NCBI GenBank assembly: GCA_904063045.1
Contig: CAJFCJ010000015.1
Location: forward strand, 62,001 to 126,000
From: Dimorphilus gyrociliatus
Lineage: Eukaryota; Animalia; Annelida
Direction: 5' to 3'
Length of the DNA: 64,000 bases
In this document: positions 12,225 to 43,994 of the stretch, one piece after another
Numbering within the stretch: position 1 is the first letter of the stretch
Layout: every line of letters begins with the position of its first letter
Notes under the pieces: model-generated
Databases searched by the model: none
What the model was told of the DNA's origin: nothing
Seen by the model: only the letters and a program-made list of their open reading frames with translations
Program-made: the position numbers and the translations under genes

Positions 12225-14065
12225 CTAATCAAAGTCCATTAGGTAGAGCCCGCGGTCAATAGCCACGTAGGTGTATCGATAATCCAGCTCTAGTGAAAAA
12301 ACCGGTGTTTTCCTCTTCACGGTGAAAAAGTATTGCATAGGCTTTTTTGTGTATCTTCTATCCCAAAGTGATATTCTAGCGTGATTAGATAATCCGACTG
12401 CTATTGCATTGTCACCATCGGTTTGCAAACTATATACAAAACTATCAAAAGGATCGGAGAATTCCAAGATTGGCTTTGTCCAAGCCGATCTGGTATCCCA
12501 AAATCTGACGTATGTATCGTACCCTCCTGTTAGAATTGAATTGTCATCGTAATTTCTTATAGCGAGTATACCAGCTCCTTTTCTGTTATTCGATCCTAAA
12601 AAACCTAATAAAATCTCTTTTTCGAGATTCCAAATTGTTAGAGGAGAAAGAGCATAATTAAGATAGGATGTGCCACATACTATATGATCGTCTATGAATG
12701 AATTAGAAAGAATTCGATCATTTAAATTAAATTGAACTTTTTTTTCTATGTTTGAACTTTTCCATATTTTTAATACTCCGTCTTCCGATCCAGTGCAGAT
12801 AGTATCTTTTGCTACTGATATACATAATATATCAGCCGCATGACAATTCTCTTTCCTCCATAGTAGATCAGCTGTAGAAGCATTAAAACAGGCCATACTC
12901 TTGTCTCTGCTTACACTATACAATTTTTCATCTTTGCAAACAAATCGGGTAACATCCTCATTATGTCCCCTAAAAATTTGATCTTCTCTCACGCAACCAT
13001 TCTTAATCTTTTGAAAACCTATGATTTCTGATCCCAAAGACATCCATAATCGATTTCCATTACTTTGCAACCAAGGTAAATGAATTTCTTTTGTCTTCAA
13101 AACACTTTTCAATTTGAATTTCCCTTTTTTTATATTCAATTCAATTCTATATTTTTCCTTGGCTACATTTTTTTTTAAAGAAAATCTTTTGTCAATTAGT
13201 CATAAAAAGAAAAAAAACTAGTTTAACGAGTTCTACTACTTTTTTCTTGAACAGCTTAGGCCATCTATATTATATACTGTCTTTGAATAATAATGTGTAC
13301 ATTCAAAATTTTTGTTTATTGAGTATTTTAAGAATTATAAGCTTTGTAAAAAGTTCTATATTTACATTCTTTTATTGCGTAATAGCTTTTTTTTATTGTT
13401 GTTTATAGTTTATTTTCGAAAGATTAGTGTTACAAACACAGAAATTAATTATAGTTTTAAGGCTGAACAAATCGTCTTAGATTTCTTTATTTTTGTTAGG
13501 TGAGTAGAATTTCTCCTATCTTCTTTGTTAGAATATCTAAAAGTGAACATTTCACGCTGTGAAAGGTTTACTTTTAGAATATACAATTGAAAATAAGATA
13601 AATAGCTTCTAAAAAAAACTAAAGCTATTCTATACTCGTATTATGCAAGAAAACACATGTTCTTCTTACCATAAAATTTATTACATCTTTATACAAAGTT
13701 AATGCTTGGCCTTGGCTTACATAACTTAAGTATTACGCAATACATAAATCACTTTTGTAAGATAAGAAATGTTAAAAATCCTAATAAATTTTCTCGAAGA
13801 GTAAAAAAAATGTAGCCAAAGTACAATTTAGTTTACAAACGCTTGTTTCGTTCGAACAGCCCACTATAGTGTGACTGATTCTTTTGCGGTTCCATATACA
13901 ATTTGAACTAAAAACTTTCCTGAATCTTCTAGATACCATTGATAGACGACACAAGGTTGTACTATCACAATAACTGGCTATATCTAAGAGAATATCGTCA
14001 GGTAATTCTCCGAAGGAGAACTTCCTATTTGACACATTAATTTGTTGTTCGTCGTACATAGACAT
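12225..14065 (-). CDS. FBXW4: F-box/WD repeat protein 4 (dactylin) homolog, ~388 aa. Probable exons 14065-13837 and 13162-12225
   Basis: F-box LPDDILLDIASYCD...LCRLSMVSRRF. WD part GHNEDVTRFV, SPLTIWNL, GAGILAI, TGGYDTYVRFWDTR, EFSDPFDSFVYSLQTDGD, LWDRR, PVFSL parallels FBXW4 (GHDEDVCHFV, CGYDTYVRYWDLR, EPHDSTLYCLQTDG). The exact junction is uncertain because an alternative acceptor exists near 13186. Confidence 0.9.
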
Positions 14066-17000
14066 ATTACAGAATACTGCGGATTTAATGATAATATTCT
14101 AATTTCTCGTTCTACGGCAACGGAGTATTTCGAAATTATCATATTTCTTGATAAATTCACCTTTACGAAAGTTCTTTTCAAATTGCAAAACTAGTCAGAC
14201 ATGTTTTGTAGTTTCGTACACCGCGTGCTTGCCAACCGACTACGAAAATAACAATTTCCCCGCTAAAAATTTAAACAGAAAAAAAATGGAAAGAGATTAT
14301 AGCGTCAGTCTGAAAAGAATGAAAATGTAAAAATGGAACCCTCTATATAAACCGATTTATTTATATAGACAAAAGCAATTTTTATGTTTTAACTATAATT
14401 AAAGTAATGAAAAATTTAACGATTCTTTTATTTTGTATATAATATAAACATGCATATGGCTTTTGTTGACGTCTAGACGTAGACATAAAAAATGGCGCAG
14501 CCTTTACTTTTTTTTAACTAAACTGTAAAATTAAATGTGGATTATGTTACTGGTGGGCGTTTTTATTGATATCCTACATAGTCCAACCAGCACTACTTTT
14601 GGTTTCCATATCAACAGTCTTAAGTCTCTTTAGAGAATGTTCCATAGAAAGTTGATTCCTTTCTCTATATTTTTTATATTCAGATAAAGAATACAAAAGT
14701 AAATCTATAAAATAGAATATTAGAGGGTTATGTTTGTCTATTTTGCTCATTTTCCCATCTATTCATTCAAACTATTAGAAGTAACAATAGAATATAAAGC
14801 TAAAATTGTTACCCATTTCATAAAAAGTTAATAGAATCATAATCTACTAATATAGGTCAATAAATTTATATAAAAGACATATATTCCCTTGTTTATCTCG
14901 TAACGACAAAACAATCCCCGATGTTTGAAAATAAATTACTCTTCTCTACTCCCTTTCCTTCTTTCAATTTAGAATCGAAGAGAAGAAGTAAATAAGGCAT
15001 TTTCGATTTCTTTTTGAAAAAAGAAACGCTTACGTCAGCTTTTTGTCGTTTTCAATATCCGGATAAATTACTCCATTCTGACTCTCTATATTTACTTATA
15101 ATTCGTATTCTACTAAATTGTTCTACTACTGTATATAGTATATTTATAGATATTAAGTGTTTGCAGTATAAAGTAATATTATATATTTATTAATAGTACG
15201 CTTTATAAAGGGTTTTTCATTGTATCAGTAAAAGTTTTGTATAACAATTAATATGCAAATTAGATATTGTTTTCAATGCGTCATCGTCATCATCATACTT
15301 TTGTATAATTGTTTATTTATATGACCTAAAAAATGTTGTGATAGGATTAAGTTCTTATTCTCAATTCCCACTCTCTCTCTCTCCCTCCCTCCCTGATCAA
15401 CTAATTAATTACATATTATACGTAAAAACTGTATAAGTCGAATTAAAGAATATTCCAGAATATTTCACCTTTATGGAATAGTTCTTCCTTGAATAATTTT
15501 GCATAGTCCGTGTCGTTTTACATTGATTTATTAACTAATATATAAAAAGATTTATTTTTAGATTGTAAAATTACTCTATTTATATTGTAATTAACTATAG
15601 TATAATGGAAATAACGATTATCTCTATTGATAAATCGTAATATGTTACGTTTGATTCACATTTCAGAAATAAAAGTTATAGTTGAATAAGTTAGATGGGT
15701 TAATTATCCAATAGAAGATCAAAGTAGGTGGGCTAGATAGATAATAAAACTAGTTATACAGAGAAAGAAACAACTATCGTGAAAAGGGAAAAGAAATGAA
15801 TATTTAATATACTAATATGAATATATAAATATATACTAGTATACATTATTGTAATGCGTAGATGAATAGATGAATTATTAAGTTGTATAATAGAGTAATT
15901 AGTTCCTTATCATTTCAAACAATTATTACTGTTTAATTACTTTTTCCCCGAATAAACCTATAACTGTCTATATAAAGTTTTGCTGATTAATGAAAATTTT
16001 TAAATAATATAAATGTAATTGAATTTAATAAATAAAATATACTATAAGTAGAAATATTCAATTTGTTAGATAGATTTTACTGATTACCTACATATGTTTA
16101 CTATTTTTAGATAGAAATTAGATTTTTAGGAAATATGTCATGTGAAAGGAGTTAATTAATAAAGGTTATCTATATTTCTCATCTTTTAACATCCATGTTT
16201 TAAAACACTTTTGATGTATGCAACATTTAACCATGTGTTTAAGACTCTTATTAGAATATAGTATGTCATTTTTATTAATATTTATGCTTTAGATCATTAA
16301 AACTACATAATTGTTTTTAGAATGAATGTAATAGTAGCTTTTTCTCGTTAAGTACCATTCATAACCCTTTGATGTTTATTACGTAATTATACCATATTCT
16401 AGGAATATCATATCAGCTATGCACACATATATATAGAGTACACAGAAGATATAAAATCCTTAAACGTGACGAATTTCTTAAAGAAATCCCTGCTTTCAAA
16501 CAAAATATCTACTATTTAAGTCATTTAATTGATAAAGGAAGGGGAATAGTCAATAGACATATTAGACAACGACTTTTTTTAATTATCTAGCAATAAGATT
16601 TTCTGTCATCCCTTGAGGTTTTTTGTTTCTTTTCTAAATCTGTAGATGTTTTATCTTTGGAAGAAAGAGAGAAAGAAGGAATGAAGTTAACGAGGAGAGA
16701 AAAGTGAAAGATAAGGCGGTAGAATAGGATATTTTACAAAGATTACAGTATATACATGTATTATAATAAGTCTCTAAGTGAAAGTCATATGTGTACAATA
16801 TATTTTTTCAGGTTTATATTGTAGCCAACATCTGTAAGCCCAAGCTGGTATAAGCTTTCACAATAATCAAAAAGAGTAGATTGTATAGATTTTCCAGTTC
16901 GTTTATTCAATTAGAAAGACAAGGTATTTCTTCAAATTTCTCAACAATTACATATATTCAACAAATTATGTCTGCTCGTAAATGTGTATGTGTATGTACA

Positions 17001-17322
17001 AGTGATAATGTGTTCGTAGTGTTGAGAATTGGCAAGAAACATAGAGACTATACAAACAGAACCAAAAAGTTAATTAAGGGCTAAACTGAGGTAACAGCTG
17101 TATAAATTACAAATTACGTACTCGAGACAAAGCGTAAATAACATATAAATAAGTGGAAATTTAGATGATTGAAATAGATAATCTAAAACATTTCTTAGAG
17201 GACGTCTACAGTTCGAATCTAATCATAAACGAGGTAAACAAGATATTCAAGGATATATGTACATCACACAAAGAGTAATAAATATCTTATCGTTCACACA
17301 TTTAGTTTATCTTCTTACTCCA

Positions 17323-18445
17323 CTATAAGGATAATTTTGAAAAAGCTTCAAGATTAGCTTCAAAATTGTCATCATTTAAACCTCCCTTCAATTGTGGAGT
17401 TTGATACACGTATTTTACGTATTCAGGGCATTTAGAATGGCTTTGCTTTGAAAGTCTGTCCAATTGATTGCTTTCATTGATAAATTCAATTATACTTCTT
17501 AACCGATCAAGGTAACTCTTTCCATAAGTTTTCTTCAAGTATTCATGTATAGCTATGGTTACTTGATCTTGGCCCGCTTTTAATTGAGGATACCTTTGTG
17601 ATGGTTTTAAAACTGTATAGGCCACGATGAGCATAGCTTCTTCTTGAGTAATTTGCAAGTTCATCATTCGCTTATAACTTTCTACTCTAAGATCTTCTCC
17701 TGTCTCTGGACTTAACTTTTCAATACATGCAAAATTGAGTTGCATTTGTTTCCCATTCAAGCACATTGTGAGTGTACCTGTCTCCGACACTGAGAGGGAC
17801 CGGTTTGCAGTATATATTAATACCATGTAATTCAAAGCGGGTACTGTTAGTGCGATAAGCTCTGCTTTCGAAAGATTTTCTGTTCCGGGCAGGCACTGTA
17901 CAAATGATACTAAATATCTCAAAGCCACTCTTAACAGTTCCTCCGACAGATTGATAAATGTTTTACGATTATCGGGTTCGATACCTGTAACAGAAACAAT
18001 GTCCATGTAGTCTTGAATACTGAAGAATTCAATTTCATTCATTTGATTTATCTCATCTATCATATTATCCAAATTAGAAATTTCTTCATGCCAATTAATA
18101 TTTTTTAGCTGTGAAAGACTTATGCGACATTGAGTTAAAACATCTTCAGTGATAGAGAATGATGGTGAATTAGGTAAATTGATTTTTCGACTAATTTCGT
18201 CACCATATATTAAACTTTCATTATATCTTTTTCTCTTTTTTGAATAACGACCAATCTTGATCTTATCCCGGGACATACCGGCCATCAGACACTTTTGAAA
18301 TCGGCAATATTTACAAAGGAACGCATAATCATTTTCAGGTATACAATCTTGTCTTCCAGTCCGACATTTATAATCTTGATGCTTCTTCTCTCCTCGACGA
18401 AAAAATACTTTACAACCTTCGCAGGTGTAACTTCCGTAGTGTAGG
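17323..18445 (-). CDS. NR1: nuclear receptor terminal cassette exon (second half of ZF1, ZF2, hinge, LBD); no own first exon found
   Basis: Acceptor ttttag|C CTA CAC TAC GGA. Reads LHYGSYTCEGCKVFFRR...CRTGRQDC...CKYCRFQKC..GMSRDKIKIGRYS then an open LBD (FVQCLPG) to the stop at 17323. The 311 bp upstream spacer has no CxxC..GG|GT exon. Confidence 0.9.
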
Positions 18446-18756
18446 CTAAAAAAATGTTTATCATGTAAAATATTATAAATGATTTAATAAATTTATATAA
18501 TAAAATATATATTGGAAAGATAGACGGTGGAAGAGAGAAGAAGAGAGAAAAGGGACAAAGGAGGTCCAAGGATTAGTTGATAAAAGATTGAATGAAAAGC
18601 ACATTAGAATAGAAATTAAATTTGAATTTTCCAACAGATTTACTTTTATTGCAAAATTTAAAATCTTCGTTATCTTATTCTGTTTGTTTTGTGTTTCTTT
18701 AGCTTTTTACAAAATGGCAACAATAATTATTGAATTATATATAAAAAGTTAAAGAG

Positions 18757-19882
18757 TTATTGAAGAGCATATTTTTGAAGGTCATCTAGAAGATTTTTAC
18801 TCTCCTCCACTTGACCAATATTATAAAGAAACTTCAATAGAACGCCTGGAAAAACGTAATTCAAGTATTTTTTATTCTGCTCATAAAACTTTTTTACTAG
18901 TCCATCAAATTGCTTAAAATAAGCGAGAAAATTAATGATGCTTTGGAGACGTATTACGAAAGAATTGCCATAAGTGCTCTGCATATAACGAGTAAATGCC
19001 AAAACTAAACGATTATGTGCAGCCATGGATTCTTTACATTTCTTTTGAGATGATACAAGATTAATGGCAAGGATTAGCATAGTTTCTTCCCAAGTGAGTT
19101 GTAAATTAAGGAATCGTTTATGATATTCTATATGGAAATCGGCTATTTCTTGATTGGATATTTGTATCATATGATTTCTGTCCAACCCTAATCGGTAATT
19201 TTGAAGGTTGAGGAAAAATTCTTCACCTTGCCATGTATATACCCCTAGAACAGCAAATGTTAAATGTACAATATTGATTGAAGATAGGATATTGAATAAA
19301 ATTTCGGCCTCTCTCAAATTCATCATTCCTGGTAGTTGTCTAGCAAAGGGGAATACATTTTTTATTGCAACTTTAAAGAAATTCTCAATTAAGATTGAAG
19401 AATGCTTTCTCTCATCGGCTTCGACTCCGGTTACTTCTAGAATATCCATGTAATCATGATTAGATAGTCTTGCGTCCTGTGCTTGTAAAGCTAAATTAAA
19501 GCCTGAATGAAAGTTTTCGATTTCCGAAGTCCATTGAATATTTCGCATGTGATTAAATGCGATAGAGCATAAAACTAGAAGATCATCAGCGTCTGAGTAA
19601 ACAGGTAATTTAGGGATATGAAATTTAATTTGTCTTAATTCTGCTAATTGTTTCATATTTTCTAAACGTCTTTCCCTGGAATATGGACCGATTTTAATTG
19701 CTCCTTTGGACATTCCGACTGACAAACACTTGGAATATCTACAAAAACGGCACAGGAATGTGTAATCGTTTGCAGGTGTACATCGTTTCTTCCCATTACG
19801 ACACGTATACTGTTGATGCCTATGTTCACTTCGCCGGAAGAAAACTTTACAAGCTTCGCAGGTATTTGCTCCATAATGATAA
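18757..19882 (-). CDS. NR2: nuclear receptor terminal cassette exon; no own first exon found
   Basis: Acceptor tttag|T TAT CAT TAT GGA. YHYGANTCEACKVFFRRS...GMSKGAIKIGPYS, LBD FARQLPGM, frame intact. AATAAA at 18650-18645. The 2.6 kb upstream spacer has no CxxC exon. Confidence 0.9.
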
Positions 19883-21532
19883 CTAAAAATACAATGGATC
19901 TAAGAGATTTTTATAACTATCGAGTATAGTTTTTTCGCAACTAGGGTAATTTAAGCAGGTAGAATCTCTTATCTTTCATCATCAAACTTATTTCTCAGGC
20001 TGAAAATCAACAAAAGCAAACAAACAAAATTTTTTTGTCTTTTCATTTTATTCTTTCTCCTTATTCCTTGCTTTTAATTATAAAAAATCATATAAATAAA
20101 TATGTCTTTTTCTTTAATAAAAAAAATGAATAAATATCTCAACTAATTAAAAACTTATTAATATTCAGATTATTCATTTTTTTTGCTTGAAATAACGAAT
20201 AAAAAGAAAGAAAAGTTTGTTTGTATTTTTTACTGAGCTTCAATTATTATGTCTCTCTTTTTAATTTGTCGAGTTATGATCAAATAATCATATAAGTAAA
20301 AAAAATGGACGATTTATTAATAAAATTCGTATTCCAAATACGCTTATATAAATCATACTAAAAATTAACAGTCTCTTGACTCGTAATGGATCCCATTAGA
20401 TTTTTATTAATGGATAAGTTATTCACATAAAAGTTAATTGAGAATTTATCTTAATCGAATATAGACCGTTTCAGAGTAAAGTCCTGGTTTAAATGGATGA
20501 GCATTTGTCAATTAAAATCTCAAGAGAATCTCTAAATCATTTAAATTATTCAATCTAAAGACATCAGTTTTTTATTTATTTATAAGAAAGTAGTAGTAAT
20601 TTTATTTGTTCTTTTTAAAGTTATCTTTATGGTGATGAAATAAAAGTCCTAATTGTTTATATATTATCAACGTATACTATAATTTATTATTGTGTAGACT
20701 ACAAGAATATTATTTGCTCTTAACTATCTTATACATTGTTTATTGAACTCTTATTTCACTTTGAGAGCTATGGGGTTTTGCTTATCGTACAGCTACAATA
20801 AATTAGAGTTAACAACAAATTGCCCATACGTGATTAGCATCTGTAAAAATAAAGAGAACAAGGATAGCAATAAGTTGTCTCTAATAATTTGATAGGGCCT
20901 TTATTACTGTAATATTTCAGCTTGAGTGTTGTTTATATGCTTTTATAACCTTTTTCCCCCGCCGGAAAACTCCATTTAAGATAAATAATTGAACGATACA
21001 CACAGTTTTACACGGAAATTGAAAATTCAATGTTGAATTACAAATGATCCTTTCCGGTTCTATAATCGAATATTCATTAAATTTTTTATTGATATAGACA
21101 AATTGAAGAATGCAGAGCTTTTAAAGAAATATATTCTTTGTCAAACGAAGACGCTTTAATTCTATATTCCTTCTAATACATTATTAGCGAAATTAATTAC
21201 TAGTAATTGTATAATTGATCTTCTCTTGAGACAATTCGAGTGGGAGTAAAAAAAATATGTGCACAAAGAAGGAAGACGTTCAAGGTTATACAAGCGAGTT
21301 TTCTTGGAATTTTAGTTCAATGTTAGACTATATTGTTCCATCGGATAATACAATAGTATTATCAATGACTTGCCACGCTGTCTAACTTATCATCCTAAGC
21401 CACATGACAGCTCTCATAGTTCTTCAATAACGTTTTTAAGAAGCATTTAACATGTGGGAAAAGACACTCTAAGTAATTTTTGTATTATGATGTTAACAAA
21501 ACAGTATAGGTGTTTTAATGATTGATATGCAG

Positions 21533-21533
<1 letters not shown>

Positions 21534-21561
<28 letters not shown>
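21534..21561. repeat. (TA)n microsatellite; similar tracts near 7887-7943, 10681-10708, 10815-10835, 31827-31863, 32056-32073, 49659-49681 and 57989-58060
   Basis: Direct reading of dinucleotide runs; boundaries are approximate. Confidence 0.9.
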
Positions 21562-21563
<2 letters not shown>

Positions 21564-22455
21564 CATTATCTTTACGTGGAAATATCCTTTGGAATAGGCT
21601 TCAATTAGTGCTATTAATTATTACATATAACAAATGAATAGCTTACAATAGGAATACCGTAACTCTTTCCCATTTTAGAAACGCAAACGCAGTAGTTTTA
21701 ATCCTTTTTCCCTTCGCACAATGAGAAAGAAACTTAACGAGATTCTCATTAAAGTTATCAACGTTTTTAAGGAAAGAATAAAGGGAAAGTGAAAACTTTG
21801 TTCTCTTACAATTGAACATTCCCATTCCATCAGAGTGTCTACTGTGACAAAGAGCAAGTGCTGAGAAGTAAATATATTTTGTATTGTAGTTTTCAATGAA
21901 CTTTTTCCTTACTTATCACACAAATGGTGTATCACTATATACTATACAGTATATATTAGTATATAGATATAGCATATATATTGACTTTTCAATAGATAAA
22001 CTTGCTTTATTCTTTACTCACAGATGAAGCATTCCGATTGAATTCCACCCAATAAACTTTTCACCCCACTTTACAAACAATACCTTATTATCAAATTAAG
22101 CCTAGTCACGTCAAAACTATCTGTATAATCCGTCCCTAGTTATACGTATTTTCATTCAATAAAGACTCAATAGCTGCTAATTCGTAGAATATATTAATTA
22201 TATTTTAGAAATTCATATAATAACAATATAGGTAATCAACGAATTATACGGTTGATTTATCATAAATTCATTAATTAGAATTAAGTCAACTAATTAACTG
22301 CTGTTTCAAATTCAAGAGACAGACAGCAAAAGTACATAGAATAAAATGTTGTACGTTAACCACAAAATCTATCTTTCTCCACTTTTAGCTTCGTAAAAGA
22401 AGAAAATAATCGAAGAAAATGACATTAATTAAACGAAATAACAAAACTAAATAAA

Positions 22456-23569
22456 TCAAAACAATTTTAACTTTTCAATACTTGCAATATTCTCTTCATA
22501 ATCACCGAGACGGTACATACTTTTAAATACTGGATTTTTAACCGTTTTACTTAAATATTCTCCATATTTTTGATATTCTTTAACAATAGCTCTCTGAAAT
22601 TCGGCTGATCTTACAAAGAAAGATAGCAATTGTTGCCATCTTAATATTGACGATTTATTATATTTATTTTCTAAATAGTTGGATAATTCTACAAGTATTT
22701 TTTTATAATAATATGCTAATATTGGTGATTTACGACTTTTAAAAAAGTTTAATGAACAAATAAGAACAATTTCTTCTCTTGTGAAATTGATTTCTTCAAA
22801 ATCTTTTGCAAATTGTTTTAGTTTTTCAAATGTAATAACAGTTGATACACTTTCTATTAATTCAGTATTAACTGTTATGTTAGTATCGCATAAATGTACA
22901 TTATATTTTTTATCGAACCAATCTTTAAGAATATTTAAATGTAGGAATAAATAAATAAGAGTTACACCAGGTACAAATCTTGTTATCTTTTCTCGTTCGC
23001 TTAATTTATCAATTCCAGGTAGATTATTTAAACAATTTGCAAACAATTGTATATAGTGAAAGAAATAGTTTTCAGAAGCTTTAAAAATTTGTGCCCTACA
23101 ATCTAATTCAACACCTGTTACCTCCCAAACGTTCACAAATTCTTCGAGTGATACAAAGTTATCTTGAGGCATTTCTGCCGCGCTAGCATCAATTTGAATA
23201 CTGAACGAAGTTACAGAAGATAAAACTAATAACGGAGAAAAGGCATTCATACATATACTTAGAATATCATCCGCTTTTAGGAATGGAGAATATAGACATC
23301 CACGATCATTTAATTTATTAGAATTACCTACAATATTCAATTTTACAATTTCATTATGTTTTATTCTAGTATAACGTCCGTATCTAGTACGATATCTGGA
23401 CATTCCTATCCTAAGGCATTTGTTATATCGACACTTTCTGCAAACAAAGCCGTTAAGACCCGGATAGCAGTTATCTTTTCCGGATTTACAATTTAAATCC
23501 TGTATCTTATTCTTGTAACGACTGAAGAACACTTTACAGGCTTCACAAGTATATGCTCCAAAGTGAAAG
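22456..23569 (-). CDS. NR3: nuclear receptor terminal cassette exon; no own first exon (127 bp spacer)
   Basis: Acceptor ttctag|C TTT CAC TTT GGA. FHFGAYTCEACKVFFSR...GMSRYRTRYGRYT, LBD open to the stop. Only 127 bp separate the NR4 stop from this acceptor. Confidence 0.9.
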
Positions 23570-23696
23570 CTAGAAACAAAGATTAAACGGTATTTAACAA
23601 TTGTCTCTGTTTTTTTTTTTACTTTCAAATGTGATTGAGTGAGGGAAAAAAGAAAAAAAAAGCATACATTTAGTAGGTTACATAGTAATTTTATTT

Positions 23697-24822
23697 TTAT
23701 AGCTTTAATGCTTTGATACTACGAAGATTCTCTTCCATATCACCAACTCTGTACAAGGTTTTTACAATTGGACTTTGGTATACGTAAGAAAAGTATTTCT
23801 GATTTTTTCGTAACATTTTATAATGATTCATAGAGAATTCTCTCATATATGCCAAAGTATTTACGACGCTTCTCATTCTTTCCAAATAGCGATGCTGATA
23901 TGTCATCTGCATATATCTAGTGAAAGCTTTATGTATGCGTTTTTGTGCGTTTATTAATTGCGGATATTTCTTTTCAGGTGATACTAAGCTTAAAGCGAAA
24001 AGTAGTAAGATTTCTTCAAGGGTTAAATCTAAACTAACTAGCCTAAAATGGTAGTCCTTTAACGATTCTACATGTTCCTCATCGGATAGAGGAATTAAAC
24101 CTCGATAGTTCATTTGTAACTTTTTTCCCTCAACGTTAACAACGAAATATTCACCCTCGAATGAATGCATCATTTCCGTTGTTAACGCTAAATGAAGAAG
24201 AGACGTACATGACAATAGTCTACACAAAACTTCCGACGAATTCATATCATTTAAACCTGGTAACTGTTTAGCAAAAGGTAAAATGTTTAAAAGTACAACT
24301 TCCATAAAGTTTTCGATAACACTAATAAAACTCTTTCTATTATCTACTTCAAATCCAGTAGTTTCCAAAATTTTAGTATAATCCTTTAAAGAGAATAAAC
24401 CTTGCTCCATCATGTGAATTGCTCTTTCCATTTCTCCGTGTAAATTTTGAATTTCTTTAGTCCATCTAACACTCCTTATATTAAGGAATGTATTACAAGA
24501 TCTCATTAAAATGTCATCAGCGTCTGTATTGCTAAATAGATAAGGCGTACTTATAACGTTAGAACTATTCTCTCTTATTTTATGATATAATATTTTGTGT
24601 TTTCTTCTTCTATCATTTGTATAACGGCCCATTTTTATTTTTTCCTGTGACATACCAATCTTTATACACTTTGCAAATCTGCAATATTTGCAGGTGTAAA
24701 TAAATGTATTAGTAGGTTTGCATTGGCGTTTTCCATCGCTGCATTTATAATGTTGCTTCTTATCCTTATTACGATGAAAGAAAATCTTGCATGCTTCGCA
24801 CGTATATGCTCCATAGTGAAAA
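23697..24822 (-). CDS. NR4: nuclear receptor terminal cassette exon; no own first exon found
   Basis: Acceptor ccttatag|T TTT CAC TAT GGA. FHYGAYTCEACKIFFHR...GMSQEKIKMGRYT, FAKQLPGL. AATAAA immediately after the stop (23695-23690). Confidence 0.9.
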
Positions 24823-25316
24823 CTATAAGGAAATATATAAACTGTAGTCTATTTTAATTCATCACATCGATCATAATCATTCAAGCTGCCAATTACATCC
24901 TAAGATAAAATGCTTCGAACGTGCTTATAAACAGGTAAATAAATGTCCATATATATATACTGTATATATGTATATAAATGGATATTTATAAACGAAATTG
25001 AATTTCTAGAAATTCGCTATCCTAAAGTTTCCTGTTCTTGTAAAAAAAAAAAGATAAGTATCCATGGTAATAATAATATTTTCATTGATTTTTCCTGGAA
25101 TTGAAACAACAGAGAAAGAGAGAGAAGTGTAAAAAAATATACATATAAATGCATATTATTACTTTCGCTTTGAGTTTTGTTTTTGTTATTTTTTAAATTA
25201 TAATTCGACAGGAACAACAATAAAAAGAGAACAAATAGAATGAATAGAGTCCACATAAAAGTGAATATATTGAGATGATAATACACTGTTATAGTTTATC
25301 AATGTAAAAAGTATTA

Positions 25317-26478
25317 TTAGTATAGTTTATTTTTCTTTGATAAAAGTTCAGCAAAGCCTTGGCAATTTTGTTCTATTTCTACCATAGCGTATGATGTTTG
25401 TTTTGATTGATCGTTAAACCAAAGAGAAACGAAAAATTTACTTTCGTACAAGTGCATTAAATAATTTTCATCCTTTTTTGCTTTCTTTGTTACGAATAAT
25501 GTTTCCTTCATTGATCCCATATAGCTTACTATTTTATGTATTCTTTTATGATAATCTTTACCATAGGTAGATTCTAAATATCTCGTAAAACTTAACAACA
25601 ATCGATTGTAGGCGGATTGAAATTTTGGAAATTTGTTCTTATCCGATAGAAGAGTTATTGTTAGAACGTAGAAAATCTCTTCTAGAGTTAGATTAAGTGG
25701 AAATGTACAACCGGTTATTACTTTTAGAAAATGCGATAAAGGTTCCCCGTGAATATCTGTAATATTTTCCCAGCTTAACGGTAGTGACCTATTGTTAACT
25801 TTTAAAACAAATGTATCATTTTCCCAATAGCTTTGAGACAAGGCCATTATAGCCATACAAATGACATCGTAATTCTTGACAAGGTTATTTATAAATTCTA
25901 ATGGTTCTATTTCACTTAAACCGGGTAGTTTCACCAAAAAGCTTATAATTTGGGTGAATACTATTTTTAGAAGCCTCTCGATGAAAGATGACAATGCTTT
26001 TCTGTTATCGATAGCCAGGCCAAGCGTTTCAAACACATCCATATACACTTGCCGGTCAAAGAGGCCCGTTTCAGCAACACTTGCCGCTTCGTTAAAGATC
26101 ATATCGAAATTTTCAATTTTATTTGACCAAATAAGATTTCTTATTTCATAAAAAGTACTCGCACCGAATACGACAAAATCATCCGCGTCTGAATAAGGTA
26201 AAAGATGGGGTGTGGCTAATTTTCTCTTTTGCATTTCAGCAACTAATAGCCTATTTTTTAATTTCCTTACGATGGTATATGGTCCGTGCCTTATAGCGTC
26301 ACGAGACATTCCGACTTTCAAACATTTAACGTATCTACACAGTTTGCAAGGGTAAACACATTTGTCAGATGGAAGACAATTCATTCTACCCGTTCGACAA
26401 GTGTATTTCTTATGTTTTTCCCAGCTCCTTCGGAAGAAGACTTTACATGCTTCGCAAGTGTAGACTCCGTAATGCAAG
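25317..26478 (-). CDS. NR5: nuclear receptor terminal cassette exon; no own first exon found
   Basis: Acceptor tattcag|C TTG CAT TAC GGA. LHYGVYTCEACKVFFRRS...GMSRDAIRHGPYT, FLVKLPGL. Upstream spacer is 345 bp. Confidence 0.9.
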
Positions 26479-26823
26479 CTGAATAGAAACGTAACAGATT
26501 CGATCTTATTAACTGTATCCATAACGGAGAATACTTAAACAAAGCGAAGCGCGACAAAACAAAACCAACATACCACCAAAAAATCTTTGAACGCCAAAAG
26601 CGGAACTCACTAAAGCAATATTCCAATCGTATTTGAAGAAATAGATAGAACAGAGGGATTTTAATTAGGAATGCAAACAATTTCATTGTATTATTCTTTC
26701 TCTACATAATTATGATAAGTTAATACTATAACAATTTTGTTAGAAAAGAAACAGATTTCTATGTTAGCATAGGAGTATATTCTGTATGCAGCATATATTT
26801 TTATAAAGCTCTTTCATTACCCG

Positions 26824-27943
26824 CTAATTTTGTGGAATGTGAACAGACGTAATATTTCTTAAGTGATCCTCCAGATTACCTAATCCATAAACAGCTTTTA
26901 CAAGTGGTTTTCTATATACCAAATTGTAATATTTCAGACCGTTCCTGCTCCCTCCTGATCTAATAAATGGACATTGACTATAATGAGACATCAAAGCTAT
27001 TATAGCCTGAAATTTTCTTATATAATCTCTTCCGTAAGTAGTCGTTAAGTAGCGAGTGAATGCTGACACCATCCGTTTATAATGATAATTTAAAACAGGT
27101 ATACCCCTTTGGGGTGATAAAAGATTTAGTGCGCATACAAACGAAAACTCTTCATCTGTTAATTTACACTCTTGCAACAGTACCTGACTTCTTCTTTTAA
27201 AATCTACTAGCCTTTCAGACATAACTGCTCGCGCTACTTCAATTCCAACAACAACTTTATGCCCATTTAAGTTGATAATCAAAAATTCATTTTCGAGTGC
27301 GCATATATTTTCCATACTCAAAACCAAATGTAAAAGACCTCCTGAACTAAGAAAGTCGCGAAAGAAATCCTTCCTTTTAACCTCCATCATACCTGGCAAT
27401 TGTTTGATAAATGGTAAAAGTTTCAGTAAAACTACTTCCAATAAATCTTCGATCAGTTGTAGCGCAATTCTTCTATCATCTACGTGCTTTCCAGTCCCCT
27501 CTAGCACTTGTACAAACGTATCTATACTATGAACTGGACTATAGATGCACTTTTGAATATTATACATAATCTCCTGAAGATTTGGCAGAGTATCAAACCA
27601 TTTAATTTGTCGTATTGAGTAAATATTATTGGAATTTCTAATTATTAAATCGTCGAGATCTGAATAAGCAGGTAATAACGAAATAGTAACTACATCTGGC
27701 GGCTGAAATTGTTTTTTATTCTTTTCTTTAATGATTTTTTGAGCATAACGTCCTCTAACAATTTTTTCTGTTGACATTCCAACTACTAGACATTTCCTAA
27801 GTCTACAACTCTTGCACAAAAATGTTGAATTTTCATTAGGTTGGCAAGTATTTTCTCCAATGATACATTTAAAATGATCCTTCTTCCGACAACGTCGAAA
27901 AAATAGTTTGCAAGCTTCACAGGTAACGGCTCCGAAGTGAAAG
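26824..27943 (-). CDS. NR6: nuclear receptor terminal cassette exon; no own first exon found
   Basis: Acceptor tttatag|C TTT CAC TTC GGA. FHFGAVTCEACKLFFRR...GMSTEKIVRGRYA, FIKQLPGM. The 924 bp spacer has no CxxC exon. Confidence 0.9.
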
Positions 27944-28867
27944 CTATAAAACATACATTAGAGTACTCCTAACTTTTTATTTTACAAATTAAATGTTATT
28001 TTCAAGACTATTTTATTATTTGCTATAATCAATCATACGATGATATGCTAAATATATAAATATATTAGTATATATGTCATCCTATAGTATTATAGAAAAT
28101 TAATAAATTATTAAAAAACAAGACATTTCATTACATTTTCTTTCCTTATCTATCGTTAAAAGAATAAATTGAATAGTCCTTGAATAATATAAGATTTGAT
28201 AACAGCGAAAAATAAGTGTTAAGGTCATTTGAAAATGTATATATACAGTAGATATACATATACTGTATATTACTATCTATGCATTTTTTATCGTATATCG
28301 TGTTAAATAATATTACGAATAAGCTTTTCATATATTTAATGTATTGATGAATATTGTTTTATAAAAGAGAAAGAAAGACTACTTATAGCAGGATAAATGG
28401 GTGATTGTCTTCTTAATAAACATAAAACAATTACTTGCCAATGCACATTGATTGTTAAAATTTCCATCTAAAAAAAGTAACCTAGAATTCAATATTCTTT
28501 TATAAAATGAATTCGCTATAAGTACAATTGATTTAATATATTTCTTCTACCTAAATAATCACCTAGTATTAAAAATTAGATATTATTAAATTTAATAAGT
28601 CTCTGCCTTTTTCATCATCTCTCCTATTTATATTAGTATGTTATCTGTTTCTTATGCAAATTATTAGAGAGTGAAAAATGATTTTTGAGAATATGAATCG
28701 AAAAAGATTTCAAGCAAATGTTTAATAGATTTAAGGTAGTAGTCAATAGCAACACCTCATGCCCAAAAAGCTTACAGTAGTGAGTGACCAACGGACATTG
28801 AAAAAGTAGTAAATTTAAGGATTTACAATAACAACAGAGTAATATATAACTCAGTGGATGGTCTTTT

Positions 28868-31160
28868 TTACATTCCTTCTAGATAATTATTTTTCTCGAA
28901 AAACATTGATGAATCTATTGACATTGATTTTAGAGCCTGATTAATTTGTTCAACTTCTTCGATTGTTCCCCCATGATATAAGAGCTTTAGAAAACAGTCA
29001 TTATTGTATATATGATCTATATACTCTTTATTATTGTTTATCCATTTGATTTCATTTAATTTACTTTCACTTGCAAAACTTAAAAAACTAACAATATCGG
29101 AAAGTCTTTTCTCGTATTTGTGACCATACTGCCTTTCCAAGTAGCGAGTAAAAGTTAAAGCAATCGTCTTGTAAATTGGTCCAAAGTGTGGAAATTTCGT
29201 ATTTGGTTTTACAAGACAAAATAGCAATATAATTACTGATTCTTCAAATGTTAGTGCTATATCTTTGTAACGATTAAGAAATTGTACTTCTTGTTCATAA
29301 GATTCTTGGTCAGAAAAATCTACATAACTTTCTTTATCCAAAACAAGTTGGGAACCCTCTGGGAATTCTAACACAAACTTATTGTTCATAAGCTTGCAGC
29401 GTTCGTTAGGAAAATATAACCAACCAAACTGATCATAGTGACTAAGAATATTTTTCCTGAAGCTATCTTCATCTAATTCAATCATACCAGGTAATGAACG
29501 TAACAAAGGAAGTACTGCTAGAAAGTTTTGCTTTGAAATTTCGTCCGATAATTGCATATATTGTTTTCTTCCATCTAATTCAACTCCTGTCACCTGCCAA
29601 ACATCCATATAGATATCTTTTGATACTGTTCCATTTGCAAGTATATTACTTGCTTCGCCGCAAATTTCTTTATAGCTTGGTGACCATTTTACTGATAACA
29701 GTTGAGAGAATGTAACGGTAAATTGATTAAGTAAATCGTCAGAATATGTGTGCCTTGGTAAAAAAGGTATAAAACTTTTCAAACGTTGATAATTAGCTCT
29801 CTTCTTCATATTTTCTTCATGTCTAACCTTTGAATAACGTCCAACTTTAATAGCAGATCTCGACATTCCAATTTCAATACATCTCTTATATCTACATGCT
29901 TTGCAGGCGAACAAAAAACGAAAATTTGGACTACATAATTTCCGTTCATTTTTACATTTATAACTTTCATGTAATTGTATACTTCGGTAGAAGAAGACTT
30001 TACAAGCTTCGCAAGTATCAGCTCCATAGTGATAGCTGTTAAATGATAAGTACTGTTCAGCACCCTACAAGTCTTTATTGATTTAAATTTTTTCAAATTT
30101 CTAATTTATTTACAATCATAAAATCCTAAAGATTTTTATATTGCTACGCCCTGTAATTGAGAGAACCGCCCTGTTCTCCTACTAGAAATAATTGATCACC
30201 GTTCTGCGAAAAAAATCGCTTTCAGCCAGGTAACCATACTTTTCTATTATTAATATCATTTCTTGAAATTTTATGTGATTATCGGTCAATGTATGCAACA
30301 ACTACAACTATTACACAATCACTTTTTCAGCTGAACGTAAGAAAGTATACGAATGCTAGCGATAAGAGTTATCTCATAATTTGGTTGTATTTAATACAGA
30401 AATAGAAGAGAAAAGTACAGAGAGGAGATAACAGATAAAAAGAAAGCCTATTAAACGTAAAAAGATATTTTTAAGTATTTCTTTTTCTGGAAGGACAATG
30501 TAAAGAAAAAAAAACAAGTTTTTTTTTATCAATTTTTGTTCTGGTGTTTTCTACAGATAAGATAATCATTAACCTTTCACCTTCTCTAAACAAGTGCCAC
30601 GAAAGAGAAAAAATAAGACAAATATAATGAAATCATTCAATAATATGTAGACAACAATAATTACAATATTGAAAAAATCAAGTGGTGAAAATCAGTTAGA
30701 AAGCAAAAGAGGTCTTTTTTTTCTGCTCTTGTCTAGTTTCATTCAATCTTATTATGGATACGGTTTTGAACGAATGTAACAATTTATTTATTTAACTTGG
30801 TCAATATGCTTTTTTTTTCTCTCTTAAGTTCTATCCATTTATCGAAAAATCTTCAATTCTCTGAACAATCTTTAACTTATACGATTAAAAAAAAAAAGAA
30901 TTTCGCGTAATATCGATAAATGGTATAGAATGGAAGATATCAAGGTTTTAAAAGGCTAATGGTACATACCCAGAAGAATTTCCTCCGCAAACTTGACAAG
31001 GAGGTAGAACAGTCTTCGTTTCGAGAGGCTCAATTTGTCTCACGCTATTCGAATCAGATGAGCTTACAGTAGAGCCTGGAGGTGAATCACTGTCATTGCT
31101 ATTTGCAATTTGATTAATGAAATCGGTCAAGTCATCATCTATGTAATTCAATTCATCCAT
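28868..31160 (-). CDS. NR7: complete nuclear receptor, ~452 aa. Exon 1 31160-30970, 934 nt intron, cassette 30035-28868. Exon 1 is the candidate shared first exon for NR1-NR7
   Basis: Acidic N-terminus MDELNYIDDDLTDF...LPPCQVCGGNSSG|YHYGADTCEACKVFFYRS, donor GG|GTATGT. Probable 5'UTR intron at 31292-31230. Confidence 0.92.
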
Positions 31161-32242
31161 TTTCGGTAGATCAACTGTACCAAAGTTTATTTACATTCAA
31201 TTATTGTCATTCAAAAATTCTACAAAGATCTGTTCAACGAAAAAAAAGGTCTTCAAGGCTTTAACTGGTTTCTATATGCGTCATAGTTTTACCTGTATAT
31301 CGTGGCGCCGCCTGTCGAATTGTTAACTCTGATAGTTTCGTATAAAGTTGATAAATTCATTATAAAGCACACCTAACGTACATATCTATGAAAGCGATGT
31401 TTAAAGAAATCAATAACTACATATAAATGATACATAACCTGTTATACACGTTTTAATTAGGCAATATATAAAGAGAAGGTATAAGAAAAGACTTTGGAAA
31501 AATTTTAAGCAAGAGTTCCCCTACCAATGACAACTTTATCATACAATAATTCTTAGATAAAGATAGTCAATTGGGGATATAGTGAGCCTCACCTGTATTT
31601 CTTTTCATATATTTACATACGGTTTTGATATGCTGTCTCCGAGTTCTAAGAATAATAACTAAACAATTTCAATAAAATCTTCTGGAATTACTAATAAATA
31701 ATAGATGAAGAAATTGATTAGTATCTATTCTATTTTATTATTGAGTTCCTAACCAATAATAAGTTATATATAAAATAAAATGCCTTTATACTGTATAATT
31801 TCAATTTCTATATAAGACAGCAACTAATGAATATATATATAAATACATATATATATATATATATTAAAGAAAAGATAAGGGAAAATAATAAAGTTTCTGA
31901 TAACATTTTATCAATTTATAAAAAAATAAAAAAACTAATCGTCCCGAAATAGAACTTAACGAATAAAAATATTCATAGATAAGATGAATACGTACCAATG
32001 ACGAAGCTATATACTCCCACACATTTCATGCATGCATGAATATGTGCGATATACAGTATATATATATATATATCTAATAAAAATAACCATATAAATTTAC
32101 CTCCTGCAACGGTTGATAACATAAAAATAAACAAGTAAAAACAGTTGACATAGCAAAAGAGTCATTTAATCTTTTGTACTAGAATTTAATAACAGAAAAC
32201 TAATATGAACAATAAGTTAAATATTGTCAATTTAAGTTTCTT

Positions 32243-33717
32243 TTACTTTATATACATTTCCTGTATTTTTTTAATATTACTCTCATAATCACCAATACCA
32301 TGTGATGCTTTGACTAGAGGATTTGTATAAATAGTATCCAGAAATTGGTTATATTTATACATATATTTTCTTGGAACTGAATTAAGTTGTGTTAAAAAGG
32401 CTACTAGATTTATAATTTCTTGCATTCTCTTGGTTGAATCTCTCCCATAGTTCGTGTCCAAATATCTTGAGAAAGCTAGAGTCATGCGATTAGAAGCTGT
32501 TTTTAAAATTCCATTGTGACTATTGCATATTGCCAATAAGTGAAGAGAACAAACAAACATAACTTCTTCATGCTTTAAATTAGCTTGAATAATTCTATTG
32601 TGACATAATTTTTGCAGTCTTACATTGTCCTTTCCCAATGTGTTTTCTAGGCTATGTAATGGATGACGGGTAGAAAAACCATTATAAGTAACTACAAGGT
32701 TGTCATCTTCAAAACCTAATATATTTTGGCTAGTTACAGCAATATGAATTAAAGCTGCAGTCATAAGAAACAGCCTCCAGAAGCTTTCCCCTTGTAGTTC
32801 ACACATTCCAGGTAATTTACTCACAAATTTGTAATAATCTGTTAAAATTATCTTAAGGAACTGTTCATTGTGTTTTAAATAGACTCTCCTATCATCCAAC
32901 TCTTTACCAGTAGCATGCCAAACTTCTATAAACTCTTCAAAAGAAATAGTATAGTCATATTCAGATGGGCTTGTTTTCTTTGCGGGGCAAATTACTTCAG
33001 ACCAATCTAGATTTTTAAATTCACAGAAATTGTTTGAACACATAATTATAAGGTCATCAGCATCCGAATGCGAAGATAATAATTGTATCTTTGATACGGA
33101 TTTGCTTGAATTATTTAATTTTTCCAATTGTGAAGCTCTAATTTTTGATTGACGACCCATTTGAACTGCTTTTTTTGACATTCCAATATCTAAACAACGT
33201 TTTAATCGGCAATATTTACAATTAAATGTAAAATTTACACCTGGACAGCAAGTTTTTCGACCGCTCAGACACTTAAATGTACCCATTTTCTGATTATTTC
33301 GAAAATAAAATATTTTGCAGGCTCTACAAGTGTATGCTCCATAATGATATCTAATAAAAAGAAAACATAGTAGTAGATAATCGTATCTTGAATCTTTAAA
33401 AATTGTTTATGCAAAGTAAATTACGGCGTTGTTAAGAATGTTTAAATGAACAAGTTTTATTTAAAAAATCGGTAATAGCAAAGAATGTTTTGCATCTTGA
33501 ATAAAGGTGTTAAAAGATAACATAGTTACATAGTACTATATGCATACCCTGTTGATTTTGCTCCACAAACCTGGCAATTCGGTAAATTTTTGTCATTTTC
33601 CGGTTCATCTATTGGGACATCAGCAAAAAATTCATCGGGACTGCGATCATCATCACATATCTTTGTTACAAAGTCCATAAAATCTATATTCAAGTCTTTG
33701 AAATTATCTGCAGACAT
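32243..33717 (-). CDS. NR8: nuclear receptor. Exons 33717-33548 and 33350-32243; unusual P-box CRACK
   Basis: CQVCGAKSTG|YHYGAYTCRACKIFYFR; 197 nt phase-2 intron; LBD open. Confidence 0.92.
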
Positions 33718-43805: not shown

Positions 43806-43994
43806 TACGTAAACTAGCTAACTGTCAAAGATATTGTTATAATCCTTTAATTAATATTGAAAATGGTATCAGATTATATCAGCAGATATCGTGACTTCGT
43901 TTTAGATATCCTCTCTAAGATATAGCTCTTGTCGAAAAAGTTTATTTTCGTATTTATTTCAAATTAAATATTATAATATATTGTATTGATTTAT

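Follow-up and report, generated by a model that had tools for sequence, protein, structure and literature searches.

A probable shared first exon for alternative nuclear receptor cassettes in the annelid Dimorphilus gyrociliatus

How can a nuclear receptor (NR) cassette that lacks the first two cysteines of its DNA-binding domain (DBD) give rise to a complete zinc finger? The question is raised by a 64-kb stretch of D. gyrociliatus scaffold CAJFCJ010000015.1 (hereafter the window). Its minus strand carries 15 NR cassettes, each an uninterrupted reading frame of 374-420 codons. All 15 are preceded by a pyrimidine-rich AG acceptor in phase 2, located exactly 22 nt 5' of the P-box cysteine, and every cassette ends in its own stop codon. 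Nine of them (NR7-NR15) have a first exon of their own, which runs from the Met to a CxxCxxxxxG motif with a GG|GT donor and has its last base at 30970, 33548, 35502, 38201, 40199, 41768, 43702, 45176 or 47037. The other six (NR1-NR6) are orphans in this respect.

The orphan cassettes occupy positions 17323..18445 (NR1, the last of the array), 18757..19882 (NR2), 22456..23569 (NR3, 127 bp past the NR4 stop), 23697..24822 (NR4), 25317..26478 (NR5), and 26824..27943 (NR6), all on the minus strand. Their first exonic bases after the acceptor (18445, 19882, 23569, 24822, 26478 and 27943, in that order) complete a Gly codon (GG+N) in six of six cases and leave a finger spacing of 13 residues. Recomputed spacers measured 311, 2573, 127, 494, 345 and 924 bp. 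When positions 17000-31300 of the minus strand were scanned for a Cys-x2-Cys motif with a GT donor after it, the only hit of the exon-1 type outside the cassettes was at 30998/30970, and a tblastn search of the spacers for hidden first exons with the nine exon-1 peptides returned nothing at E<0.09. The original prediction, made from the sequence alone, had described nine first exons with a GG|GT donor, six orphans that keep an acceptor in the same phase and at the homologous codon, no CxxC GG|GT exon in the NR1-NR6 spacers, the same spacer lengths, and an NR7 intron of 934 nt; all of this was confirmed, the lengths being identical. The 2573-bp spacer between NR2 and NR3 holds what is probably left of an eighth, decayed cassette (20331..21051, minus strand), as judged from weak colinear tblastn matches to NR15 residues 31-105 (E 0.02) and NR2 residues 220-259 (E 0.36).

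The donor at 30970 belongs to the first exon of NR7 (30970..31160, minus strand), an open frame of 63 codons plus 2 nt that ends at GG|GTATGT and encodes an acidic A/B region together with cysteines 1 and 2 of the zinc finger (CQVCGGNSSG). It is separated from the NR7 cassette (28868..30035, minus strand), which carries the remaining DBD, the hinge, the ligand-binding domain (LBD) and a stop, by an intron of 934 nt (30036..30969), whereas the equivalent introns of the other eight genes with first exons measure 70-197 nt. A bipartite upstream element (ACGAAAAT, ~13 nt, then GACAYCT) lies 70-210 nt before the ATG of NR9-NR15. The element is, as originally claimed, missing from the NR1-NR6 spacers; however, NR7 and NR8 carry only a degenerate form of it, and consequently its absence from the orphans tells less than had been assumed.

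We consider it likely, with a probability of about 0.65, that the region 17323-31160 (minus strand) is one transcription unit in which exon 1 is shared by alternative cassettes. A single promoter would drive the constant first coding exon (31160-30970), which would supply an acidic N-terminus together with the initial cysteine pair of zinc finger 1, and its one phase-2 donor (30970) would be spliced in cis to any one of a series of cassettes further downstream. From its conserved acceptor onwards, each of these would complete finger 1 and add finger 2, the hinge, a divergent LBD and its own stop, so that every splice choice would yield a different complete NR with the canonical C-x2-C-x13-C-x2-C spacing. 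That one exon serves seven mutually exclusive cassettes is suggested by purifying selection on the half finger, conserved acceptors, the exon-less layout of the array in a related species, the published absence of spliced leaders, and the existence of a second, larger array.

Direct evidence comes from contigs of the public sequencing run X1. This run is RNA, since the paralogue DgyrCDS12402 appears in it with a 72-nt intron removed: a loose contig end at 30034 proved to be the exon-1 end of this paralogue abutting exon 2 directly, whereas in the genome a GT..AG intron of 72 nt separates the two. Contig depth ranged from 56 to 1148 in X1, compared with 211-298 in run X3, which is DNA. Nearly the whole locus is transcribed, with 0.93-0.97 of sampled words present in X1 across 17326-24848 and 25200-31200, spacers included. 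One contig (record 1, depth 387.5) joins donor 30970 to the NR6 acceptor at 27943 on the minus strand, skipping 3026 nt with exact GT..AG borders and continuing through 2513 nt of NR6, spacer and NR5 with 0 mismatches, its exon-1 side being 21 letters long, short of the 31 letters required of a bridging record. Exon 1 therefore reaches one downstream orphan cassette, and the resulting NR6 product has CQVC, 13 residues and CEAC, a complete first finger. The junction search covered a 6-kb stretch that holds two of the six predicted junctions (NR6 and NR5) and the NR7 acceptor. Of the two, the joint to NR6 had been correctly predicted, whereas the joint from 30970 to the NR5 acceptor at 26478 was not listed among the X1 contigs, the sequence running unbroken through 26478. 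Nor did the list include the usual joint of NR7, from 30970 to 30035, the contig being unbroken through 30035. Both absences are weak evidence, because contigs drop rare paths; they also mean that the sharing of exon 1 between two alternative cassettes lacks direct demonstration.

The depths of these contigs bear on two competing explanations. Record 7, which covers exon 1, stops exactly at 30970, reaches upstream to ~31324 and has a depth of 1148, whereas the path through the retained 934-nt intron (record 4, colinear over 28140-30999) has a depth of 240, less than that of the junction contig. Exon-1 depth is greater than that of both observed continuations combined (387 + 240), a pattern that fits further splice partners. 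It is unlikely that NR7 exon 1 serves NR6 with or without NR7 only, the orphans obtaining their CxxC exon elsewhere: from NR8 exon 1, from another upstream exon through read-through, or in trans as in mod(mdg4). The NR6 junction is the sole one seen, an NCBI model that fuses NR8, NR7 and NR6 hints at evidence of read-through, and the acidic regions encoded by exon 1 of NR7 and of NR8 are similar. Against such a source stand the position of NR7 exon 1 as the nearest phase-2 donor, the excess depth of its contig, the lack of any other donor within 17000-31300, and the lack of data joining another exon to the orphan cassettes. A second explanation takes the NR6 junction for noisy splicing of read-through RNA and the orphans for decaying duplicates; it draws on the disrupted NR6 and NR3 of the related species, the dead cassette between NR2 and NR3, and an X1 contig that reads through NR6 into NR5. 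We regard it as highly improbable, given that the junction contig is deeper than the unspliced path, that six frames of 374-405 codons remain open in NR1-NR6 despite 30% GC, that dN/dS is ~0.1 in NR2, NR4 and NR5, whose synonymous sites are nearly saturated, that NR1 has a pN of 0.29 against a pS of 0.77, and that a second array holds 15 more intact cassettes. We infer that NR1-NR5 also use exon 1, that joining occurs in cis rather than in trans, that each cassette has a separate polyadenylation site, and that some rule picks the cassette to be joined.

All 15 cassettes match the Pfam zf-C4 profile (PF00105, best E-value 2e-16), with matches that begin only at profile position 12-14 of 70, so that the cassettes lack the first two cysteines, and the six remaining DBD cysteines are invariant. 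On reading frame and phase, NR1-NR5 joined to exon 1 would give the same finger spacing and Gly codon as NR6. A single splicing choice had been proposed to swap the P-box, D-box and ligand pocket together. Of these, the P-box is nearly constant (CEACK in NR2-NR7, CEGCK in NR1), and the differences between cassettes lie in the D-box region, the hinge, and chiefly the LBD (25-35% identical). The Pfam LBD profile (PF00104) was weakly matched by 2 of 15 cassettes (E 4e-4). The NR1 cassette is nevertheless predicted to carry the helical-sandwich fold of NR ligand-binding domains: its AF2 model has a pLDDT of 85-92 across the LBD, and Foldseek retrieved full-length NR structures together with the LBDs of ROR, LXR and VDR at probability 1.00 and a TM by target of ~0.6.

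Comparison with the orthologous array of a related species (L001/L008), in which cassettes are 65-82% identical at the nucleotide level, indicates which parts of the array have been maintained. The first exon is absent from every spacer of that array, and the acceptor AG is kept in all seven comparable ortholog pairs (NR1-NR7). NR1-NR6 thus have the properties of variable exons, being devoid of a first exon of their own, retaining a phase-compatible acceptor and sharing a layout conserved in the relative. Values of dN/dS against the ortholog were 0.13 for NR2, 0.10 for NR4 and 0.07 for NR5 (0.13 for NR7), and fell to 0.04-0.08 in the DBD of NR2, NR4 and NR5. The half zinc finger (first 17 codons) had a pN of 0 at pS of 0.18-0.62 (0.55 in NR5). 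These substitution patterns point to purifying selection on NR2, NR4 and NR5 that is strong in the DBD part. NR1, with saturated synonymous sites, has an intact ortholog in which the first 21 residues are identical. The NR3 ortholog is frameshifted and that of NR6 is disrupted as well, which counts against the shared exon.

The same comparison bears on the view that NR1-NR5 are independent genes for N-terminally truncated proteins, either LBD-only products starting at the methionine of the GMS motif or, in NR5, a half-finger product. NCBI models of 311-318 aa begin at this internal Met, and that of NR5 is 401 aa long; furthermore, a 140-nt conserved noncoding block before the NR5 acceptor (26479..26618, minus strand) could be a promoter. 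The core of the block (~26550-26479) is more conserved between species than the synonymous sites of the cassette. However, the DBD part lies upstream of that Met and is preserved by strong selection, its six cysteines being invariant and its first 17 codons free of amino-acid change; the acceptor AG is kept as well. In addition, ATGs that lie in frame ahead of NR5 and NR6 are either missing or shifted out of frame in the relative (the one at 26522, within the NR5 block, is out of frame there), and the 127-bp spacer before NR3 leaves hardly any room for a promoter. We therefore find truncated genes very improbable. Even less credence is given to the cassettes being downstream genes of an operon, with a spliced leader added at their conserved acceptors. 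Acceptors with no donor of their own and short spacers would suit such an operon, but finger 1 would then miss two zinc ligands although its second half is conserved, the sole junction seen goes to exon 1 and not to a leader, and an Rfam search of the window found no SL RNA. The genome paper reported no over-represented leader in D. gyrociliatus 5' UTRs and neither operons nor trans-splicing, as in other annelids (PMC7854359).

Other observations count against a shared exon. Short introns (median 66 bp) are removed best in D. gyrociliatus and retention rises with intron size, whereas the model requires introns of 3-12.5 kb. AATAAA or ATTAAA occurs within 400 nt past the stop of NR2, NR4, NR6 and NR7; neither was found within that distance of NR1, NR3 and NR5, which also speaks against it.

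Alternative-exon arrays behind a constant exon, as in Dscam, make competing RNA structure a natural idea. Dscam-like docking and selector control is not supported here, the regions upstream of the cassettes showing no consistent complementarity. One candidate docking site (30737-30765) paired better than shuffled sequences with the upstream regions of NR5 and NR1 only, and was not found in the ~1 kb of orthologous intron available. A block of the NR7 intron that is conserved in the relative (30502-30587; TTATCTTATCTG, GATA-like) showed no excess complementarity to these regions, except weakly to that of NR2 (z -2.2).

Nuclear receptors are textbook one-gene proteins with one DBD and one LBD. 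To our knowledge, the known NR isoforms (RAR, ROR, E75, EcR) vary only in the N-terminal A/B region, through alternative promoters, with DBD and LBD fixed. The array involves the same protein family and the same A/B-DBD border, but would hold the A/B region constant and exchange the DBD and LBD. In the Drosophila genes lola, broad and mod(mdg4), an invariant 5' part is joined to one of several alternative 3' exons that encode DNA-binding modules, each with its own stop, and trans-splicing is established for mod(mdg4) and lola. The likeness would consist of one promoter, constant N-terminal exon(s) and many 3' exons that make many transcription factors from one locus. The constant part of those genes, however, comprises an entire BTB domain and their variable part C2H2 or FLYWCH fingers, whereas exon 1 of the present array stops within a zinc finger, giving two of four zinc ligands, and the variable exon comprises the rest of the DBD and the whole LBD. 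Clustered protocadherins and UGT1A have variable first exons with their own promoters and constant 3' exons, the choice being made by promoter. The likeness to the proposed array lies in tandem, diverging full-module exons that use one constant part, so that isoforms are gained by exon duplication; the polarity is mirrored, with variable exons 3'-terminal and a choice that would have to be made through splicing and/or polyadenylation. The supplementary nhr genes of Caenorhabditis elegans also form large tandem arrays of fast-diverging orphan NRs with barely recognizable LBDs, but each copy is taken as a complete gene, whereas a first exon accompanies 9 of the window's 15 copies and none of the 15 in the part read of a second locus. 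The original prediction knew of no comparable NR arrangement, and our literature search found no description of an NR locus with a constant A/B region and exchanged DBD and LBD. The arrangement is real, probably new for nuclear receptors, and partly demonstrated. A constant N-terminus with swapped DBD and LBD would represent a new route of NR diversification, in which the first zinc finger is completed only by the splice, and would show a very compact genome (median intron 66 bp) expanding a family by duplication of terminal exons and not of whole genes.

The second locus, on scaffold CAJFCJ010000009.1, contains 15 intact cassettes with acceptors in the part read and no first exon across 22.8 kb. 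We tentatively suggest, as a speculative extension, that most of the D. gyrociliatus repertoire of >40 NRs derives from a few loci with a constant exon and a cassette array (7 cassettes here, 15-24 on CAJFCJ010000009.1), the zinc finger being assembled across an alternative junction by cell-specific or stochastic choice. If true, ligand-sensing transcription factors would be diversified much as protocadherins are, and a compact genome could expand a gene family with no duplication of promoters.

Public annotation has been affected as foreseen, automated models having truncated the orphans. NCBI represents NR1-NR4 as truncations that lack the DBD (the NR4 model has 311 aa from an internal Met) and fuses NR6 with NR7 and NR8. 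Faulty D. gyrociliatus models comprise proteins of 1206 and 808 aa in the window, of 986 and 685 aa in the second array, and at least six DBD-less models of 311-338 aa. Owing to these truncated and fused models, NR counts and expansion analyses of this reference annelid are wrong.

All 15 stop-free blocks of the window (374-420 codons each) lie on the minus strand, and each starts with xH(Y/F)GxxTCxxCK, with zinc finger 2, the hinge and some 300 more residues after it. Nine of them (NR7-NR15) have a short exon ahead that runs from a methionine to CxxCxxxxxG and ends in GG|GT in phase 2; these ends, located by open reading frame and donor, are at 30970, 33548, 35502, 38201, 40199, 41768, 43702, 45176 and 47037 (-). 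A pyrimidine-rich AG acceptor was found in 15 of 15 blocks at the same codon position, 22 nt ahead of the P-box cysteine. The cassettes are real receptors: zf-C4 was matched in all of them, and the AF2 model of NR1 predicts a confident LBD, matching those of ROR, LXR and VDR as well as full-length nuclear receptor structures.

The original prediction held that the other six cassettes, NR1-NR6, have no CxxC exon with a GG|GT donor in their spacers, and this was borne out. A scan of all minus-strand frames of 17000-31300 for CxxC followed by GT yielded no first exon for NR1-NR6, since every site was inside a cassette or in the wrong phase, with the sole exception of 30998/30970, and tblastn of the nine exon-1 peptides against the masked spacers gave no match. 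Spacer lengths, intron lengths and coordinates were likewise all reproduced on recomputation. Two candidate first exons were rejected: at CFIC|GTGAGT (22031) the phase is wrong and Cys2 would be split, and CWFC at 26570 is not kept in a related species with an orthologous array. The donor at 30970 closes the first coding exon of NR7 (exon 1, 31160-30970, minus strand), and splicing from it to each orphan acceptor would give a complete Gly codon and the canonical 13 residues between Cys2 and Cys3.

Contigs of public sequencing runs were aligned over 25200-31199, a stretch comprising exon 1, NR7, NR6 and NR5. One of these runs, X1, is dated 2017 and its library kind is unrecorded. A loose end of X1 at 30034 proved to be the exon-1 end (CQVCGISSSG) of a paralogue, DgyrCDS12402, joined straight to exon 2, where the genome copy carries an intron of 72 nt with GT..AG ends, and a DNA run, X3, has intron sequence at the same site. 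Because this intron is removed in X1 and present in X3, and because depth is uneven in X1 (56-1148, versus 211-298 in X3), X1 is identified as RNA. It holds 93-97% of sampled words across both long queried stretches, spacers included, and almost the entire locus is therefore represented in RNA.

The decisive X1 record is a 2534-nt contig with a depth of 387.5, whose first 21 letters, fewer than the 31 of our bridge criterion, match the 3'-terminal 21 nt of exon 1 and whose remainder runs from 27943 down to 25431 with zero mismatches. The joint between 30970 and 27943 skips 3026 nt that start with GT and end with AG on the minus strand. A second record (depth 1148) terminates precisely at 30970, and a third (depth 240) begins 30 nt within exon 1 and continues colinearly via the 934-nt intron into the NR7 cassette, which is the pattern expected of a 31-mer assembly graph that branches at a splice donor. 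The proposal that exon 1 is spliced to alternative cassettes thus stands for NR6, the joint being at the predicted position; the corresponding joints with NR7 and NR5 are not listed among the X1 contigs over 25200-31199. These contigs are continuous across the NR7 and NR5 acceptors, so that, among its contigs, the X1 sample has such junctions rarely or not at all. Retention of the 934-nt NR7 intron is in line with the poor splicing of long introns published for D. gyrociliatus (PMC7854359), and it makes the splicing of the 3-12 kb introns that the array model needs a point to be explained. Contigs of X1, X3 and X7 break, with many loose ends, in a low-complexity or repeated A-rich and TA-rich stretch at 28075-28270, which overlaps an 18%-GC segment (27944-28139); X1 coverage is zero over the 196 nt that precede the NR6 acceptor.

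Other runs were less informative. Run X7 was rejected as RNA because C>T and G>A changes pervade its contigs over 25200-31199, which identifies it as a bisulfite or enzymatic-conversion methylome library; it bears the species label, yet holds only 3% of words. Run X2, a coral metatranscriptome, gave short contigs 97-99% identical to the locus over 26016-28062, and the coral sample is consequently home to D. gyrociliatus itself or to a closely allied strain. One X2 contig spans the NR6 acceptor unspliced at a depth of about 3, and is uninformative on junctions. Logan-derived proteins and contigs found by look-up were colinear, unspliced contigs of genomic type from the related species.

A search of 5.8 billion proteins turned up a single close relative, which led to a 17-kb contig of this species (runs SRR23372216, -28, -29 and -31) in which NR7 exon 2, NR6, NR5, NR4, NR3, NR2 and NR1 follow one another as in D. 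gyrociliatus. Nucleotide identity between orthologous cassettes is 65-82%, spacers are mostly unalignable, and a first exon is absent from every spacer of the relative's array. An assembly that had dropped the first exons would have undone the prediction; this explanation was rejected because the relative's independent assembly has equally exon-less spacers. The acceptor AG is kept in 7 of 7 ortholog pairs. Values of dN/dS, proposed earlier as a check, are 0.13 (NR2), 0.10 (NR4) and 0.07 (NR5), not near 1, and 0.13 for NR7, which is directly preceded by its own first exon. In the half finger, 17 codons long, non-synonymous changes number zero at pS 0.18-0.62, and the first 21 residues of NR1 are identical in a protein with 54% identity overall. 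That the NR6 junction is splicing noise over pseudogenes is unlikely under such constraint, even with NR3 and NR6 disrupted in the relative.

With the half finger strictly conserved, the acceptor conserved and no start codon of their own, the orphan cassettes must receive the other half of the finger from an upstream exon. A spliced leader cannot supply a half finger, and SL trans-splicing is reported absent in D. gyrociliatus and annelids generally (PMC7854359); an SL operon, which would place an acceptor ahead of each cassette as observed, is unlikely. No donor lies within reach other than the one closing NR7 exon 1, and this was seen joined to NR6. We favor, with a probability of roughly 0.65, a single transcription unit in which one constant exon, NR7 exon 1, would be spliced to any of several terminal cassettes used as alternatives. 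Its main rival, that some cassettes take another first exon (e.g., that of NR8) or join in trans, we regard as rather improbable. A phylogenetic tree, in which NR9-15 form one well-supported clade and NR1-8 are deep with poorly supported branching order, is compatible with both single and multiple origin of the orphan cassettes.

The array evolves through the birth and death of cassettes, as indicated by the disrupted NR6 and NR3 of the relative and by a decayed cassette in the NR2-NR3 spacer. This probable dead eighth cassette (20331-21051, minus strand) retains weak colinear remnants of a finger-2 region and of one LBD segment, and its presence explains the 2573-bp length of the spacer. NR12 and NR13 (40559-43805) stem from a recent duplication of a whole gene (branch lengths of about 0.2, support 100/100), and their first exons have the basic end KKT(I/V)LPPC in common.

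Searching 1.84 billion cluster representatives with a profile built from the 15 cassettes recovered DgyrCDS10211 and DgyrCDS10212, identical to window sequence; the family comprises about 50 clusters at 50% identity, ORFs of the relative among them. Adding 62000 to a window position gives its coordinate on scaffold CAJFCJ010000015.1. Truncated automated models had been anticipated, and NR1-NR4 are indeed deposited without a DBD in GCA_904063045.1, as models of 311-318 aa starting at an internal Met past it. These models would suit cassettes that are independent truncated genes, an unlikely reading given the conserved half finger. The public NR5 model (401 aa) starts at the ATG immediately upstream of the acceptor; in the relative, the ATGs that stand in frame just ahead of NR5 and NR6 are missing or in another frame, and the annotated NR5 start is hence fortuitous. 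NR8, NR7 and NR6 are fused in a single 1206-aa model (26824-33717), and NR14 and NR13 in the 808-aa DgyrCDS10211 (42491-45303). Such fusions are annotation errors, and among the models inspected only that of NR15 matches the two-exon structure. At a second locus, DgyrCDS7638 (986 aa) and DgyrCDS7639 (685 aa) each fuse two or three cassettes, and a 2192-aa model is probably a similar fusion. This locus, reached through the first two fusions and located on scaffold CAJFCJ010000009.1 around 1.56-1.59 Mb, spans 22.8 kb and contains 15 intact cassettes of 369-381 codons, each with a perfect acceptor ahead, and no first exon was found anywhere in the 22.8 kb. The exon-less arrangement is a design of the gene family and not a local accident.

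The nearest systems in logic are lola, broad and mod(mdg4), transcription-factor genes with constant 5' and variable 3' parts, and the protocadherin and UGT1A clusters show the mirror image of the D. gyrociliatus locus. Three features set this locus apart from all of these: it encodes nuclear receptors, what is exchanged is the rest of the DBD together with the LBD, and the junction runs through a zinc finger. In known nuclear receptor isoforms it is the A/B region that varies. A literature search recovered no account of such a nuclear receptor locus or of nuclear receptor arrays in D. gyrociliatus, and the constant-exon and cassette organization is here partly demonstrated. Within the portions of the text and supplements of the genome paper covered here (PMC7854359), nuclear receptors are unmentioned and only nine expanded families are reported.

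Conserved noncoding elements may bear on cassette choice. The longest conserved block found in the 934-nt NR7 intron (30502-30587, minus strand; 76% over 93 nt versus the relative) contains TTATCTTATCTG, with two GATA-like sites, and shows no excess complementarity to cassette upstream regions apart from a weak one for NR2; an intronic enhancer at this site is possible and would also account for the length of the intron. A Dscam-like docking site in this intron was supported by neither pairing nor conservation: the candidate beats shuffles only for the NR5 and NR1 upstream regions and was not found in the available part of the relative's NR7 intron. Ortholog comparison revealed noncoding blocks of strong conservation immediately ahead of the NR5, NR4 and NR2 acceptors (26479-26618, 24856-24907 and 19883-19959, minus strand), candidates for splicing-control elements or internal promoters. 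The core of the NR5 block is conserved above synonymous sites of the cassette, and the NR5 and NR4 blocks share a GATCGA(A/T) core. A 73-nt block of the NR2-NR3 spacer (21359-21431, minus strand; 11183-11255 of the relative's contig L001) is 77% conserved in an otherwise unalignable spacer, has stops in every frame, and could be a regulatory element or small RNA. NR9-NR15 first exons are preceded by a bipartite promoter-proximal element, ACGAAAAT and G(A/T)GACAYCT separated by about 13 nt, at 35669-47375 (-) and 70-210 nt upstream of the start codons, with an extra copy at 36196/36172; NR7 and NR8 have a degenerate version only. Its second half bears a loose resemblance to a CTCF-type core, which is reported as the motif found most often in promoters of D. 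gyrociliatus (PMC7854359).

An Rfam search of the window returned no family, a protein atlas search with the kinase exon gave nothing useful, and polyA hexamers (AATAAA or ATTAAA), in DNA of 70% AT, occur within 400 nt of the stop in NR2, NR4, NR6 and NR7 and not in NR1, NR3 or NR5. Genes on either side of the array are of ordinary kinds: a dystrophin- or dystrobrevin-like C-terminal coiled coil (48922-53018), an SGF29-like exon (55935-56291), a YKT6-like longin exon (58901-59188), NEK2 (60589-63141), an F-box/WD40 gene (12225-14065) and a PIM-like kinase exon (2270-2629). NEK2 was named by Pfam and homologues, the F-box/WD40 gene by Pfam, and the others from translations alone. The D. gyrociliatus protein DgyrCDS1651 shares no more than 63% identity with the NEK2 exon and is therefore a paralogue.
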